64,000 nt of DNA from Laetmonice hystrix (taxonomy: Eukaryota), in NCBI GenBank assembly GCA_965235115.1, contig OZ249451.1, positions 20,150,001 through 20,214,000 of the forward strand, read 5' to 3'. Position 1 is the first letter of the stretch. Each line of letters starts with the position of its first letter. Below are positions 32,790 through 39,232 of the stretch, piece by piece. The notes under the pieces are model-generated. The model made no database searches. It was given only the letters and a program-made list of their open reading frames with translations, and was not told where the DNA came from. A program made the translations under genes and the position numbers.

Positions 32790-33101
<312 letters not shown>

Positions 33102-34336
33102 CCAAGATGTCCTCATGACTCTGTCTCGTGGTATGACAACTGACAGTAAGAATTAAGTTTGGGAGAGTATAACGACATGGAGATTGACTTTTTTTTTACT
33201 GCTGACTCCAAACTGACATGACTGGAGAGAGAATTAACGAATATTTTGTTTAAAAGAATGTGGTTTGTTTCGATGTGGTGTTCCATATGTCTTCTTGGGG
33301 TAATAATTATACTCTCCGGCGAGTCAGTGAGCTGAGCACAAATGCGGAGGATCATAGGCACCCATATAATGTAGGGAAACTTCGTAAAATGTCCAATCAG
33401 CAAAAAAAGACGGCATTATTATAGAAACGTGGTAGAAAGGGTAAAGTAAAACGCTGTATTTTTATTTTTATTTTTCCCCTTTATGAAAGTATAAAAGAGT
33501 CGTTTTACACGATCAATATTGTAGCCAGTAATATCTATTCTCATGGTATGTTATCCCGTATCACATTACGTCCTTGATACCGTCCTGTGTTTCGGAAGCA
33601 ATGGCGAATTATTGCGCAGGAAGTTGAGCGCTCATAACCCATGCGACGGAATATGAGTCTGTGTAACTTGTATATCGGTCAGCAAGCGAACGTATGGACG
33701 TACGTCCACCCCAGCTAACAACAAGGCCCGTCTAGAAAAGGGGGAAACATTGTAGTTGTCAAGGTAGCGAGGTGCTGACAAGGACTGGTTTTGAACTGCT
33801 GAGGCTCTTCCAATCGTAGAAATCATTGATCTTTAAGGCGAAAAGACTCGGCGAGTCCCGCGAGCAAGACTTGAAGTGGAACTTGGGAATCGTTGGTAGG
33901 CAATTCACCGTCATCGTCGCTGTTATGATCGCTACAGTTACCGCTTGGGACTACTTCTCGTTCTATGCAAACATCTCGAATCTGGACTGCGAGGGGGGAG
34001 CATTTCTACGCATGCGTGGTGGGTTTAGGGGGGGGGGGTTCTGAAGTAAAAAGTAAGTGGACTTCATGGATGGAAAAGTTGTCAACGGGAAGCCGGCGGC
34101 GTCCCTCGCCTACGCACACGTTCGCAGTGACTGTTTGTTGATTGCCGTAGGGTGTTCGATGAGGTCAAAGACAGGGTCATATTATGATATGCCAGGCAAA
34201 AAGGGTAAAGGGTAGCCTTTCAGAAAGGTTTCTCCGCGGTTTATATACAAACACATAATGTCCTAACAATCCGTATGTATTCAGTATGGGCTCTGCAAGA
34301 GTAATACGCCAAACTATTTCAGAGCAATGCAATTGC

Positions 34337-34342
34337 AATAAA
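34337..34342 (+). terminator. Candidate polyadenylation signal of the Antp-class gene
   Basis: First AATAAA I found after the stop codon (about 1.24 kb downstream), followed by AT-rich sequence. Not confirmed without transcripts. Confidence 0.35.
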
Positions 34343-35256
34343 CTTATTTAGTATTTAGTCTCAGTAACCTACTTAACTTGAGGCGCGGGGCTGCAGACTT
34401 TAAAACGAACAACAAAAATGTTCTATCTGTATTAAATACTTTTTTTGTGTTCTTTGGTGCCTGAATAGCTCTAAGAGTGATTGTCACCGGGATCCCGATG
34501 TAGCAAGAGGAAACCGAGTTTCCAGGTTTATACTTTGGGGTTGTGGGATATTTGTAGATCTTAGGGCAGTTTACCACATGTAACATTAGGCTGTCGAGTC
34601 TTTATAGTGCATTCAGTAATTATTGGCGGCGTAAAGCCCAATACAAGGTGATTCCTTAACAAAATCACACCTTTGTTTGACAGGGTAAAGTTTGTTGTTG
34701 TAATTGTTGTTATTAAATGACCTTTAGTATATACATAACACTCCCTGTTGTTATCAATGTATATGTCATGAGGTTTCTACCGTTTCACAGATAAATACAT
34801 TGTGTATTAGTGTATGTGTTTAGGGTCTCACGTAGTTTCACTGCGTCGTTCGATAGACAAATCCCGAGTTCGACGATCGGCGATTCATTGTCATTTAGAT
34901 TAATTTTTGCACCTACTTAATGAGGTTGGCAACTCTTTTCTGCGTGTTCGCATAATTAATCAACCATCTGCTGTCACCCACCTACGTCTTTCCCAACACA
35001 ACGCCATGGGAAGAGAACAAAAGAGAATGCGCCCAACGTGCCAGCGTCCAAGGAGACGATGGCTGCTTGTTTGCTGGGTTTGTGTCTCCAACGAAAACAA
35101 CCAACGGAAGGAAGCCACGTGTAACGCCGCCATCGACACACAGAAGCCACCGGACCGCGAGCCAGTATCCATGGGAACGGGAACACGTGAGAGCAAGAAG
35201 GGTTCGGGCGAAACTCAGTCAGCATGTGAGAGCGTTTCCATGGGAACAGGGGATGC

Positions 35257-35325
35257 CCATGCACCCTGTAGAACCGAGCTTGTGGTACACGCTTCCCTCA
35301 CAAGCCTGTTCCACAGAGTTCATGG
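35257..35325 (+). ncRNA. mir-10: miR-10-family microRNA precursor
   Basis: 5p arm caccctgtagaaccgagcttgtg (35262-35284) matches miR-10b (UACCCUGUAGAACCGAAUUUGUG, from memory) at 20/23 positions. It pairs with cacaagcctgttccacagagttcatgg (35299-35325) across a 14-nt loop. UGUG is at the loop base and CNNC (ctac, 35339-35342) lies 17 nt after the predicted 3p end. Confidence 0.88.
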
Positions 35326-36483
35326 TGCGTTTGCTATGCTACTTCCTGCACGCATGCTGCACAGCTTTGCCTCCAAAAAACAAAAACCAAAAACAAACAA
35401 ACAAAAAAACCCTTCGCTTCTCTTCGGCGTGGGTGGTGTAAGTGCTTCTCATAGTGGTTTCAATCGTGGCGGGTCAATGCTGACTTTTTCACAAAGTCAG
35501 GCAAAGTGATGGCCATCTTGGGTTTCCGTACTTGCTTCGTTATGTTTGATTATGCATTTACTAGTGCCGTGTTGGGGTGTGTGGGTGTATGTGTGTGTGT
35601 CCCGCCGACCAGTAACATTGTGCTGTCGGTCATGACCGTAACATGCAGAGATATATGTGATATTGCTATATGTGTATACAAACTCTTAGCCTCTACCAGA
35701 CACAGGTGCTAAACAAAGCATATTTTCAGATATCTCGGGTGAATGGCTTTGACTAATCCTTTGCTTCTCTCTCTCCCGTTTTCCCCTTTAAAAGATCATT
35801 TTTTACATTCATATTCGATTCCCCTTGCTTCTACTGCCTATTTTTCTATTTCTAAATCCGCGTCCTTGACATTTTGAAAGGTTCAGGAATTGCCTCAAGT
35901 GACAAAGTGCAATGTTGTAATGGACAGCAAATCTGGATTTTTAAAATAAAGCTTCCTGCCTTTGTACAGAAAGAACGATTCATCATTCTCTTTAAACGAG
36001 GTAAATCGACGAACTCTATGCACCTACCACGACACCTATCACAATACTGATTGGTTGACCCTGGTCACGTGACCCCCCGACCCTTGGTCCTGACATTTTA
36101 GCATGCATGTGGTAACTACAGGATGTGTTGTGCTCCCGTCCCAGATATGGGTCAGTGGGTCTTGACCAGCAAGGTCTAGTCACAGACAAATATGGGGATT
36201 TAATTACCCATGATGTGCATACTTAGAGTGCCTTAGTGTGAGTTTGGAGAACATCGACAACAATAATTTACGGCTGACAACTATTATAGAGTAGAGCTGA
36301 ATTGTGTGACAAACTCGGAGACTGCCTGAATATAAAACGGCTGAGGGTCCTTGAACAGTATTACCTGAACTACTCTGTGGTCCTTTCACCAACACAAAAC
36401 CCTGGCAGTCTGCAAACATTGCTATAATCTATAAACACGAGTCTCCCTACTAGACGTATGGTATATATGCAGCGAAGTTCAAT

Positions 36484-38000
36484 GTGATGGTTAGCGCTAA
36501 TCATCATCACCACTATACAAGTTGAGTGTGATTGTTAGACCTAATCATCATCACCACTATACAAGTTGAGTGTGATTGTTAGACCTAATCATCATCACCA
36601 CTATACAAGTTGAGTGTGATTGTTAGACCTAATCATCATCACCACTATACAAGTTGAGTGTGATTGTTAGACCTAATCATCATCACCACTATACAAGTTG
36701 AGTGTGATTGTTAGACCTAATCATCATCACCACTATACAAGTTGAGTGTGATTGTTAGACCTAATCATCATCACCACTATACAAGTTGAGTGTGATTGTT
36801 AGACCTAATCATCATCACCACTATACAAGTTGAGTGTGATTGTTAGACCTAATCATCATCACCACTATACAAGTTGAGTGTGATTGTTAGACCTAATCAT
36901 CATCACCACTATACAAGTTGAGTGTGATTGTTAGACCTAATCATCATCACCACTATACAAGTTGAGTGTGATTGTTAGACCTTATCATCATCACCACTAT
37001 ACAAGTTGAGTGTGATTGTTATACCTTATCATCATCACCACTATACAAGTTGAGTGTGATTGTTAGACCTTATCATCATCACCACTATACAAGTTGAGTG
37101 TGATTGTTAGACCTAATCATCATCACCACTATACAAGTTGAGTGTGATTGTTAGACCTAATCATCATCACTATACAAGTTGAGTGTGATTGTTAGACCTT
37201 ATCATCATCACCACTATACAAGTTGAGTGTGATTGTTAGACCTTATCATCATCACCACTATACAAGTTGAGTGTGATTGTTAGACCTAATCATCATCACC
37301 ACTATACAAGTTGAGTGTGATTGTTAGACCTAATCATCATCACCACTATACAAGTTGAGTGTGATTGTTAGACCTTATCATCATCACCACTATACAAGTT
37401 GAGTGTGATTGTTATACCTTATCATCATCACCACTATACAAGTTGAGTGTGATTGTTAGACCTTATCATCATCACCACTATACAAGTTGAGTGTGATTGT
37501 TAGACCTAATCATCATCACCACTGTACAAGTTGAGTGTGATTGTTAGACCTAATCATCATCACCACTGTACAAGTTGAGTGTGATTGTTAGACCTTATCA
37601 TCACCACTATACAAGTTGAGTGTGATTATTAGGCCTAATCATCATCACCACTATACAAGTTGAGTGTGATTGTTAGACCTTATCATCATCACCACTATAC
37701 AAGTTGAGTGTGATTGTTAGACCTTATCATCATCACCACTATACAAGTTGAGTGTGATTGTTAGACCTTATCATCATCACTATACAAGTTGAGTGTGATT
37801 GTTAGACCTAATCATCATCACCACTATACAAGTTGAGTGTGATTGTTAGACCTTATCATCATCACCACTATACAAGTTGAGTGTGATTGTTAGACCTAAT
37901 CATCATCACCACTATACAAGTTGAGTGTGATTGTTAGACCTTATCATCATCACCACTATACAAGTTGAGTGTGATTCTTAGACCTTATCATCATCACCAC
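36484..38000. repeat. Minisatellite, 44-bp unit, about 34 copies
   Basis: Consensus is ct(a/t)atcatcatcaccactatacaagttgagtgtgattgttagac. A few units have 3-bp deletions. Confidence 0.97.
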
Positions 38001-39232
38001 GATAATTCGATTCGGCTGCATGCCCAAGCTAAAAAAGCTCCAAGGAATGTTTTGTTTGAGAAACCGACAATGTGCGTTGATTCCAGGCGTCGCGGGCTGT
38101 GATTGTCGATAGTATCGCATCTACTAATTATTGCATGTCTGACGATGAAAGGAAAGATGTTGTAATAAAAAGTTACTTGGTCTCATTCCCTGTTCTGACG
38201 GATGGTAAGAGTTTACGGACACGGACGACAGGGGAAGTGGGGCAGTAGAAGATTATTACATCGCAAGCTGTTCTTTTTTCTAGACGCTTTTCAAAATATT
38301 TATGCCAAGCCCATATTAATTTTAAGTTGGGAGTTATGCGCTTATGAGCTAGACAAGACATTTTGTAGCGCCCCCTCCCACACAAGATATTTATAGACCC
38401 CCCCCCCCCCCGATTCCAAATGGCCCGACCTGCCAATTTCTACGGGGTTCTAAATCTGAGAAACTGTAATTGTGATATCAGGGCCCGTCAAGGGAGTCTT
38501 CGATAACGGTTGTTGTTAGCTTATCAGGTCAACAGGCCGTGAAACGGGCGCGTTTCTTCGGCATTAATAGCGGCGCTCGTTAGGGGGCAAACCTTCGTTC
38601 GTTCCCGCATCGTTCGTTATCAGCTAAACCATCTTGTCTGGGCAGGACCCCTGGTCGTTGTGAATGTGCCGAACCCAACCTCCTCCAATCACCCTCAACA
38701 CAATGGTCTGTTAATATCCCCATGCGCAGCATCCCTTGACACCCCCTGCCCACCTCACCCTTAATGTTTATTAGACCCATTGAGTTTTACTTTTCAATTT
38801 ACATTTGTTTCAATTTAGGTGGCTCGTTACGTCTCAAGTCACGTGCTCGTTTAAATGAACTAATAATTAAGTAAGGGAATGACCGCTCGCTTGCTTCTAT
38901 TTGGTCAAGTACAACATGTACTGTCCACTAAACGGTGACCGGCCGGCCAGGCATATTTATGCGACCCGGGAAAACAATTGGGAAGAGTCCCTGGTCAACT
39001 GGACGATGGGGGGCTGAGGAGAAATAGCCACTGGTCACTTAAAGTGCAGACTTAATAAATGACCTTGGTCTCCACAGGGATCGGGAAATGACTGCTTTAA
39101 GACTTAACGAAGCAAATGTAATCAAAGCCATTCAAGGTGAAAGGGGATCAGATGTTGTCATTTCACGAAATGTACGAGTAATTGATTCCCCCGACACCGG
39201 GTCCTTCTGTATCGAGCGAACTGATACTAACG

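Follow-up and report, generated by a model that had tools for sequence, protein, structure and literature searches.

Hox-embedded mir-10 genes in annelids

Extra mir-10 paralogues embedded in annelid Hox clusters have already been described in papers of 2012 to 2025 (PMC3394115, PMC6160089, PMC12257675). Capitella carries additional mir-10 copies within its Hox cluster, which Heimberg and McGlinn set explicitly beside the mir-10 duplications of amphioxus (PMC3394115). Five Mir-10-P1 paralogues are recognized in pleistoannelids, of which P7 and P8 retain the P1 seed and have their changes placed at nucleotides (nt) 13 to 16 (PMC12257675), and mir-10c, equated with Mir-10-P7, is annelid specific (PMC6160089, text and S3 Table). 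For Efe-Mir-10-P1f (efe-mir-10b) of Eisenia fetida, both mature and star reads have been reported (PMC6160089, S2 Table), and the 2018 Eisenia table files this gene as a lineage-specific duplicate of P1 (PMC6160089).

Here we analyze a hairpin 3′ of Antp in Laetmonice hystrix. Unless prefixed C21, positions are those of the window, the whole 64,000-nt stretch of DNA that was analyzed. Hairpins of this genome contain the Annelida-restricted miRNAs Mir-1996 (22 of 22 nt), Mir-1998 (21 of 22), and Mir-1997 (21 of 23), and from the presence of these three families we conclude that the host is an annelid; Eisenia-derived patterns for mir-1991 (P6) and mir-1987 found no convincing match in the same genome. 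The COI gene contains 12 in-frame TGA codons, and the longest stretches of it free of stops measure 55 aa.

A miR-10-family hairpin downstream of Antp

The plus strand from 35241 to 35352 folds into a single continuous hairpin with a minimum free energy (MFE) of −40.4 kcal/mol (z = −2.26 versus 200 shuffles). According to the MFE structure and its pair table, the full primary stem, comprising lower stem, miRNA duplex, and loop, extends from 35248 to 35335 (+). The fold agrees with an earlier reading made from the sequence alone (the sequence-only reading), which had described a well-formed hairpin whose lower stem pairs GGAUGC (35251 to 35256) with GCGUUU (35327 to 35332). Its form is that of miR-10-type hairpins, i.e., imperfect, about 60 to 75 nt long, with two ~22-nt arms, and free of large internal loops. 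Sequence and conservation mark the 5p arm, CACCCUGUAGAACCGAGCUUGUG (35262 to 35284, +), as the probable mature miRNA, with the seed ACCCUGU at nt 2 to 8, while likeness to the 3p* strand of Efe-Mir-10-P1f marks the 3p arm, CAAGCCUGUUCCACAGAGUUCA (35301 to 35322, +), as the probable star strand. The apical loop region that separates the arms in the fold (35285 to 35300, +; 16 nt) has 12 unpaired nt, or the 14 nt of the sequence-only reading once the G35285-U35298 wobble pair is discounted.

We predicted the ends of the pre-miRNA by placing the register of the read-supported Efe-Mir-10-P1f precursor on the Laetmonice hairpin, which gives a 61-nt product (35262 to 35322, +). In the fold, these transferred ends leave a 2-nt 3′ overhang, with 35321 and 35322 projecting beyond the partner of 35262, and the geometry of the Eisenia reads yields 2-nt overhangs at both ends. 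Below the predicted Drosha cut lie ~11 bp of lower stem. Both processing motifs noticed earlier are present, UGUG at 35281 to 35284 and CNNC (CUAC; 35339 to 35342, +) at +17 from the predicted Drosha 3′ cut; a basal UG at −14 is absent from the Laetmonice hairpin.

Several lines of evidence assign the hairpin to the miR-10 family. Its 5p arm CACCCUGUAGAACCGAGCUUGUG contains the MIR-10 5p pattern (ACCCUGUAGA...CCGA...UUGUG with seed ACCCUGU) and is identical at 19 of 23 nt to the canonical miR-10 of annelids and, according to the sequence-only reading, at 20 of 23 to vertebrate miR-10b. Efe-Mir-10-P1f matches at 21 of 22 nt in the 5p arm and 18 of 22 in the 3p* strand. The Rfam mir-10 model (RF00104) scores 29.5 bits on the plus strand; the E value is 8.9e-5 for a 1-kb search and 0.0125 for the whole genome. 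A search of the whole 64-kb window at Rfam gathering thresholds returned no match, the hairpin emerging only in E-value mode. However, the gathering score of RF00104 is 47.5 bits, and the undoubted canonical mir-10 of the same genome, at 44.4 bits, also falls below it, which makes the threshold uninformative for this lineage. The 627-Mb genome has six copies of the exact 15-mer ACCCTGTAGANCCGA, and every one falls within the Hox cluster and on its plus strand. The hairpin, its 5p sequence, the RF00104 match, and the Hox strand bear out the original family call, and on these sequence grounds we take the post-Antp hairpin to be a genuine miR-10-family microRNA gene.

Position within the Hox cluster

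Translations place an Antp-type homeobox exon at 32790 to 33101 (+), with its homeobox at 32910 to 33089 and its stop codon at 33099 to 33101. Within the cluster, the gene (C21:20182910) is flanked by Lox4 and Lox5, and the hairpin lies 2.16 kb 3′ of its stop codon and 36.6 kb ahead of the Lox5 homeobox (C21:20221899). The hairpin shares the plus strand with every Hox gene from Post2 to Hox1. The sequence-only reading had assigned the gene to the Hox strand, with Antp on one side and a probable Lox5 on the other, and the next homeobox is indeed identified as Lox5 by its KLTGP motif. It had also set this location against the canonical Hox4-Hox5 position, as though one stood in place of the other; that part does not stand, since the Scr-Dfd interval has a standard mir-10 (UACCCUGUAGAUCCGAAUUUGUG; C21:20342220), which lies 157 kb beyond the hairpin and on its strand. 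Given this gene and, in the Dfd-Hox3 interval, a hairpin of the mir-993 type, the post-Antp hairpin is an extra copy, an addition and not a relocation. An array of six copies lies between Lox2 and Lox4.

Orthologues and conservation

Comparison with other spiralian Hox clusters, suggested in the sequence-only reading, recovered orthologues 2.2 to 4.3 kb after the Antp-type exon in four annelid genomes. The equivalent hairpin follows this exon by 2.3 kb in Capitella teleta (scaffold KB310318.1), 4.3 kb in Paralvinella palmiformis, and 3.1 kb in one ENA assembly, which together with Laetmonice make up our conservation alignment. The position past Antp had been presented as unusual; for annelids it is not, as the distance in Capitella illustrates. 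Across the four syntenic orthologues, 22 nt of the 5p arm (35263 to 35284) are invariant, the 3p arm is almost invariant, and the loop differs in sequence in each, with lengths of 16 to 22 nt. Their consensus fold retains 27 pairs, and each of the four has a CNNC motif at +17 to +19. The base preceding ACCC is C in Laetmonice and two orthologues, G in Capitella, and U in Eisenia. This alignment, with conserved arms around a variable loop in a syntenic place, shows the usual conservation pattern of a miRNA. Within the source sample, four sequencing runs contain no variant from 35067 to 35482, against a difference of ~0.8% in the 3.3 kb on either side and around it.

No mir-10-like hairpin was found within 10 kb downstream of the Antp-type gene of the gastropod Candidula unifasciata or on Logan contigs L026 and L027, the latter of which resembles insect Antp. 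On a third Logan contig (L025), which carries a compact non-annelid cluster, only one hairpin resembles mir-10, and its 5p sequence is that of standard mir-10. These results, from a thin sample of sequences, agree with a paralogue restricted to annelids.

Identity of the paralogue

With high confidence, based on arm sequences and synteny, we interpret the hairpin as a working MIR-10 gene orthologous to the annelid mir-10 copy in the Antp-Lox5 interval, most likely mir-10c/Mir-10-P7. It is an ordinary new orthologue of an already known paralogue, and the suspicion in the sequence-only reading that the gene might be a catalogued spiralian extra proved sound, as the published Hox-embedded copies of annelids attest. 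The P7/mir-10c label was reached by elimination, since P1, P4, P5, and P6 each differ in sequence or in position. With the predicted 5′ end taken at 35262, the 5p arm shares the P1 seed and differs from P1 at nt 1, 12, 17, and 18; set against the published P7/P8 changes at nt 13 to 16, the differences at nt 12, 17, and 18 are an inexact fit. Moreover, the Eisenia gene labeled P7 (UACACUGUAGAAUAGGCUUGUG) is more diverged from the Laetmonice hairpin than is Efe-Mir-10-P1f. Given large-scale duplication in Eisenia, Efe-Mir-10-P1f may be one of two co-orthologues. A full-text literature search with the 5p sequence (in RNA or DNA spelling) and with the names cte-miR-10 and pdu-miR-10 retrieved no paper, nor did one combining miR-10, Hox cluster, Lox5, and microRNA.

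Seed, target sites, and the 5′ end

In 33 kb of sense-strand flanks following Hox stop codons, the canonical 8-mer ACAGGGTA occurs eight times versus 0.5 expected (Poisson P of ~7e-8), and once in the antisense control of these flanks. Nine canonical 7-mers were found in the same 33 kb, eight of them being 8-mers that end in A, with sites concentrated after the coding regions of Hox1, Scr, Antp, Lox4, and Lox2. This enrichment is not assignable to the post-Antp paralogue, since its seed is shared by at least six further genes of the cluster. In the probable 3′ untranslated region (UTR) of Antp, one ACAGGGTA match lies at 34680 to 34687 (+), inside a deep contig of run X4 (33713 to 34722), and has no second copy in the 64-kb window, both strands considered; the seed-site scan also placed a 7-mer-m8 match (ACAGGGT) at 34171 to 34177 (+). 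A predicted Hox1 site offers extra pairing to nt 11 to 15 (AACCG), which would favor paralogues with A at nt 12 over canonical miR-10. Most targets of the post-Antp miRNA are probably also those of its paralogues, which would leave 3′-supplementary pairing and the place and time of expression as the only differences.

Argonaute disfavors 5′ C and 5′ G, and a 5′ end shifted inward by a single base is therefore conceivable. If the mature strand of the same gene began at A35263 (ACCCUGUAGAACCGAGCUUGUG), its seed would be CCCUGUA and its targets unlike those of miR-10. The variable base before ACCC (C, C, C, and G, with U in Eisenia) and the invariant 22 nt after it would suit such a start, and seed shifting was raised by Heimberg and McGlinn as possible for one Capitella mir-10 paralogue (PMC3394115). 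However, the Eisenia reads begin at the homologous U, the P1 seed is kept by P7 and P8 (PMC12257675), and the 2-nt overhang geometry matches a start at 35262. The shifted-seed site UACAGGG is also not enriched, occurring once in the 33 kb of Hox 3′ flanks versus nine canonical 7-mers, and the sites after Hox genes are ACAGGGUA 8-mers. We consider the seed shift contemplated in the sequence-only reading unlikely and retain 35262 as the predicted 5′ end.

Strand of the product

Another question is whether the functional product might be antisense, as iab-8 is to iab-4, or come from both strands. The minus strand folds better than the plus strand (−45.8 kcal/mol; z = −3.24) and itself matches Rfam mir-10 at 24.9 bits, the read contigs carry no strand information, and conservation does not discriminate between strands. 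However, it is the plus strand that has the family 5p sequence, the higher Rfam score (29.5 bits), arms matched by the Eisenia reads, and the CNNC motif in four of four orthologues. This is also the strand of every other exact-core copy and of the whole Hox series, Post2 to Hox1. Taken together, we judge an antisense or bidirectional product very improbable and the plus-strand gene the better reading. That the hairpin is a decaying or chance miR-10-like sequence that goes unprocessed, as its Rfam score under the gathering threshold might hint, or the sole mir-10 of the species moved from Hox4-Hox5, is scarcely credible; we rejected the former on the four-genome conservation in the same syntenic place and the confinement of the exact core to the Hox cluster, and the latter on the standard copy still at C21:20342220.

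Transcription and a possible pathway

A poly(A) hexamer of the AATAAA/ATTAAA type at 34712 to 34717 (+), 1,611 nt past the stop codon, likely marks the main 3′ end of Antp mRNA, and the deep contig of X4, a run that is probably RNA, ends just past it. Shallow X4 contigs, which are without strand information, cover a stretch from 34800 to 35860, one of them lying over the hairpin (35180 to 35469). From 35902 to 36450 there is no X4 contig, while three DNA-like runs cover everything. A repeat occupies 36497 to 36982. Cotranscription with Antp, as the sequence-only reading had allowed, is possible; the low-depth, probably RNA contigs over the hairpin hint at it, although they lie downstream of where Antp is likely polyadenylated.

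Transcription on the Hox strand would begin either at a start of the gene's own or through low-level read-through beyond the Antp poly(A) site. Drosha would then cleave the stem ~11 bp from its base, releasing the 61-nt pre-miRNA (35262 to 35322), Dicer would take off the loop, and the 23-nt 5p strand would enter Argonaute and, through the canonical seed ACCCUGU, repress mRNAs with ACAGGGU(A) sites. More tentatively, the miRNA might come largely from Antp read-through past the poly(A) site at ~34.72 kb and feed back on Antp (through the sites at 34680 and 34171) as well as on more anterior Hox mRNAs. We hold this to be doubtful, but if true, it would amount to a built-in, paralogue-specific “posterior prevalence” and an autoregulatory loop in the annelid Hox cluster.

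Comparison with known systems

Laetmonice adds one more species to a known pattern, in which annelids duplicated mir-10 inside the Hox cluster and invented no new Hox miRNAs, and the position of this paralogue is now fixed a few kilobases after Antp in four genomes. For annotation, it is of value that the Rfam gathering threshold misses both the post-Antp gene and canonical mir-10 in this genome. Of greater interest than the hairpin itself are, in our view, the enrichment of canonical 8-mers downstream of Hox coding sequence and the six-copy Lox2-Lox4 array.

Canonical mir-10 (Mir-10-P1, RF00104) belongs to the same family and has the same 5p seed, Hox-strand orientation, and hairpin layout, but it lies between Hox4/Dfd and Hox5/Scr and not in the Antp-Lox5 interval, and the post-Antp gene departs from it both at the four 5p positions given above and in its 3p arm. 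Like the Laetmonice hairpin, annelid Mir-10-P7 is an extra Hox-cluster copy on the Hox strand; it has the P1 seed and changes 3′ of it, as Laetmonice would with the predicted 5′ end, although its first base is U where Laetmonice has C. The first base likewise differs (U versus C) in Efe-Mir-10-P1f, the nearest published sequence. The extra mir-10 copies of amphioxus, at Hox5/6 and Hox9/10, are also Hox embedded and central or posterior, but these duplications are independent and belong to another phylum. Finally, mir-196 of vertebrates and iab-4/8 of arthropods are functional analogues embedded in the central or posterior Hox cluster, with mir-196 and iab-4 falling outside the MIR-10 family.

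Results and Discussion

A genome search with the Antp homeodomain recovered a complete, co-oriented Hox cluster on C21 of the 627-Mb assembly, where the window spans C21:20150001-20214000. With names assigned from flanking motifs, it comprises Post1 (19.388 Mb, on the strand opposite to the other Hox genes), Post2 (19.520 Mb), Lox2 (19.599 Mb), Lox4 (19.986 Mb), Antp (20.183 Mb), Lox5 (20.222 Mb; KLTGP motif), Scr (20.278 Mb), Dfd (20.385 Mb), Hox3 (20.547 Mb), Hox2 (20.597 Mb), and Hox1 (20.633 Mb). The Antp-type homeobox occupies 32910-33089 (+) of the window and the stop codon 33099-33101, so the Antp-Lox5 hairpin starts 2.16 kb downstream of the stop. Positions 35241-35352 (+) fold as one hairpin (MFE, −40.4 kcal/mol; z-score, −2.26 against dinucleotide shuffles). 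Its pair table gives a lower stem of 35251-35261 paired with 35321-35332, two more pairs at 35248-35249, a miRNA-like duplex above, and an apical loop with 12 bases unpaired (14 if the closing G-U pair is left out). The 5p arm, 35262-35284 (CACCCUGUAGAACCGAGCUUGUG), ends in UGUG (35281-35284), and a CNNC motif (CUAC, 35339-35342) lies 17 nt beyond the inferred 3′ cut. All features described in the sequence-only reading, including the fold, 5p arm, UGUG, CNNC, and place after Antp, are present. The window returned no match at Rfam gathering thresholds; in E-value mode, the top match to the hairpin region was mir-10 (RF00104), at 29.5 bits over the full model length on the plus strand, with 24.9 bits on the minus strand. 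The Antp homeodomain itself is slightly unusual in that it departs from AHALCLTERQ, the reading shared by Capitella, Paralvinella, and most other Antp proteins, and its C-terminal tail (KKECRQLDG...) is divergent too.

Transferring Eisenia read ends onto the hairpin would place the 5p start at 35262 and the 3p end at 35322, giving a predicted 61-nt pre-miRNA with a 2-nt 3′ overhang above a lower stem of ~11 bp; the putative Dicer end would likewise be offset by 2 nt (35284 versus 35301). The first 5p base is C in Laetmonice hystrix and two orthologs; Capitella has G and Eisenia has U. Because this base varies among relatives, the mature miRNA may have a shifted 5′ end, as initially proposed. 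Against such a shift, the Eisenia reads begin at the homologous base, paralogs P7 and P8 keep the seed of canonical mir-10 (P1) according to PMC12257675, and the target sites after Hox genes are of canonical type.

These sites were sought on the sense strand of the Hox 3′ flanks, taking 3 kb beyond every one of the 11 stop codons (33 kb in total). Nine copies of the canonical 7-mer ACAGGGT are present; eight of them are full 8-mers (ACAGGGTA), against 0.5 expected (Poisson P ~7e-8). For comparison, the antisense control gave one match, composition-matched 7-mers averaged 1.5, and UACAGGG, the shifted-seed site, matched once. Canonical matches follow Hox1 (three), Scr (two, plus three 7-mer-A1 sites), Antp (34171-34177 and 34680-34687), Lox4 (one), and Lox2 (one); of these nine ACAGGGT matches, all are 8-mers except one of the two after Antp. 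The 34680 site is the sole ACAGGGTA in the 64-kb window, the others lying in C21 flank loci L029, L030, L032, and L036. This enrichment supports Hox targeting by the MIR-10 family as a whole and is not attributable to the Antp-Lox5 paralog in particular, since several other cluster genes share the seed. In an exploratory comparison, the Hox1 site at +274 showed extra pairing to nt 11-15 of those paralogs whose nt 12 is A (−25.2 kcal/mol, versus −17.1 with canonical miR-10).

Searching proteins with the Antp exon as query identified annelid Antp-type proteins on long contigs, and 10 kb of flank was fetched around several. Rfam and direct motif searches located orthologous hairpins in three flanks: 2.3 kb after the Antp-type exon in Capitella teleta (L021:18446-18520), 4.3 kb in Paralvinella palmiformis (L022:15177-15256), and 3.1 kb in an ENA assembly (L023:13400-13475). 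The synteny check that had been suggested bore out the position, with the same hairpin 2.3-4.3 kb after an Antp-type exon in three further genomes. In the four-genome alignment, 22 nt (ACCCUGUAGAACCGAGCUUGUG) are invariant and the 3p arm nearly so, the loop varies in sequence and in length (16 to 22 nt), CNNC stands at +17 to +19 in all four species, and the consensus fold retains 27 pairs. Conserved arms with a free loop are the standard pattern of a processed miRNA, and conservation of this kind rules out a chance hairpin. No hairpin of this type was found in the gastropod Candidula, in 10 kb following its Antp-type gene, or after the Antp-type gene in two short Logan contigs. A compact non-annelid cluster (L025) contains a single mir-10-like hairpin, and its 5p sequence is that of standard mir-10.

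A genome-wide RF00104 scan followed by folding of matches placed a textbook mir-10 at C21:20342220, between Scr and Dfd (5p UACCCUGUAGAUCCGAAUUUGUG; 44.4 bits), a mir-993-type hairpin at C21:20483274, between Dfd and Hox3, and mir-100 and mir-125 together on C19. Since the textbook gene is present, the Antp-Lox5 hairpin is an extra copy; we reject a displaced canonical mir-10, and the earlier wording that set this hairpin "rather than" at the canonical Hox4-Hox5 position gives way to coexistence. The exact core ACCCTGTAGANCCGA has six copies genome-wide, every one in the Hox cluster on the plus strand. Another mir-10-like hairpin (C21:20377646-20377724, L007) lies between canonical mir-10 and Dfd; it scores 31.8 bits in Rfam on the minus strand, and its plus-strand 3p arm resembles the mir-993-type 3p.

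Outside the window, the 387-kb Lox2-Lox4 interval holds six MIR-10-type hairpins, all on the plus strand (C21:19731709, 19750710, 19824645, 19853954, 19914249, and 19953892; L004, L047, L048, L049, L003, and L006). Their 5p arm reads (U)UUACCCUG[U/C]AGAACCGAGCGAGUG, with the seed changed to ACCCUGC in two copies. They are alike over the ~70- to 90-nt hairpin alone; because the flanks do not align, we reject a recent segmental duplication, and the array consists of old copies maintained by selection.

Published work assigns mir-993 and mir-1991 to the family (PMC3394115), the latter located between Post2 and Post1 (PMC4138081). In the Eisenia study (PMC6160089), P5 is mir-10b of annelids and molluscs (5′ UUACCCUG...), P6 is mir-1991, and P7 is the annelid-specific mir-10c; P7 and P8 differ from P1 in the 3′ part, as stated in PMC12257675. 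Among read-supported Eisenia sequences, Efe-Mir-10-P1f (5p UACCCUGUAGAACCGAGCUUGU, 3p* CAAGCCUAGUCUACAGUGUUCA; PMC6160089) is nearest to our hairpin, with 21/22 (5p) and 18/22 (3p*) identities. Because P1, P4, P5, and P6 differ in sequence or position, the gene is, by elimination, most likely mir-10c/Mir-10-P7. The sequence-only reading was half right: a genuine MIR-10 gene lies between Antp and Lox5, but it is a known annelid paralog at a conserved position, alongside canonical mir-10, and what is new is solely one more ortholog, in a newly assembled species.

A search for runs recorded as RNA from this organism found none. Four sequencing runs, all from one sample, contain the locus. Three are genome-sized contig sets with flat depth; the fourth (X4; 58 Mb of contigs, depth 5 to 372 on adjacent pieces) behaves like RNA. 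Its deep contigs span 33102-34722, shallow ones cover 34800-35144, 35180-35469 (across the hairpin), and 35617-35860, and none covers 35902-36450; a poly(A) hexamer stands at 34712. We infer a 3′ end of the Antp mRNA near 34.72 kb, with weaker transcription extending beyond it and over the hairpin. This pattern is compatible with both read-through and an independent pri-miRNA. Contigs reveal neither the strand nor the ends of a transcript. An A-rich low-complexity tract lies directly 3′ of the hairpin (35375-35410), and internal (oligo-dT) priming there could raise apparent RNA coverage of the hairpin region. The four runs show zero variants in 35067-35482 and differ at ~0.8% in the surrounding 3.3 kb, which is mild evidence of constraint. 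A repeat of at least 100 letters, with short words that recur >12 times in 33102-39000, first appears at 36497-36982, ~1.2 kb past the hairpin.

Three families taken as Annelida-restricted from the Eisenia S2/S3 tables (PMC6160089) were found, each in a good hairpin with the mature sequence on the expected arm: Mir-1996 (22/22 match to Eisenia; C12:9302838, L045), Mir-1998 (21/22; C18:3692382, L042), and Mir-1997 (21/23; C19:9699986, L044). Their presence indicates that the host genome is that of an annelid. Eisenia-derived patterns for mir-1991 (P6) and mir-1987 had no convincing match in the genome. A tandem array at C11:16601980-16604586 (48-bp period), whose unit comes within ≤3 mismatches of the Mir-1998 pattern by coincidence, is probably an unrelated satellite.

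The six-copy Lox2-Lox4 array and the Hox-wide 8-mer enrichment are by-products more notable than the Antp-Lox5 hairpin itself. Published tables give merely one to two genes of the Lox2-Lox4 type in Capitella and Eisenia. In position, the Laetmonice hystrix array parallels mir-196 and iab-4.
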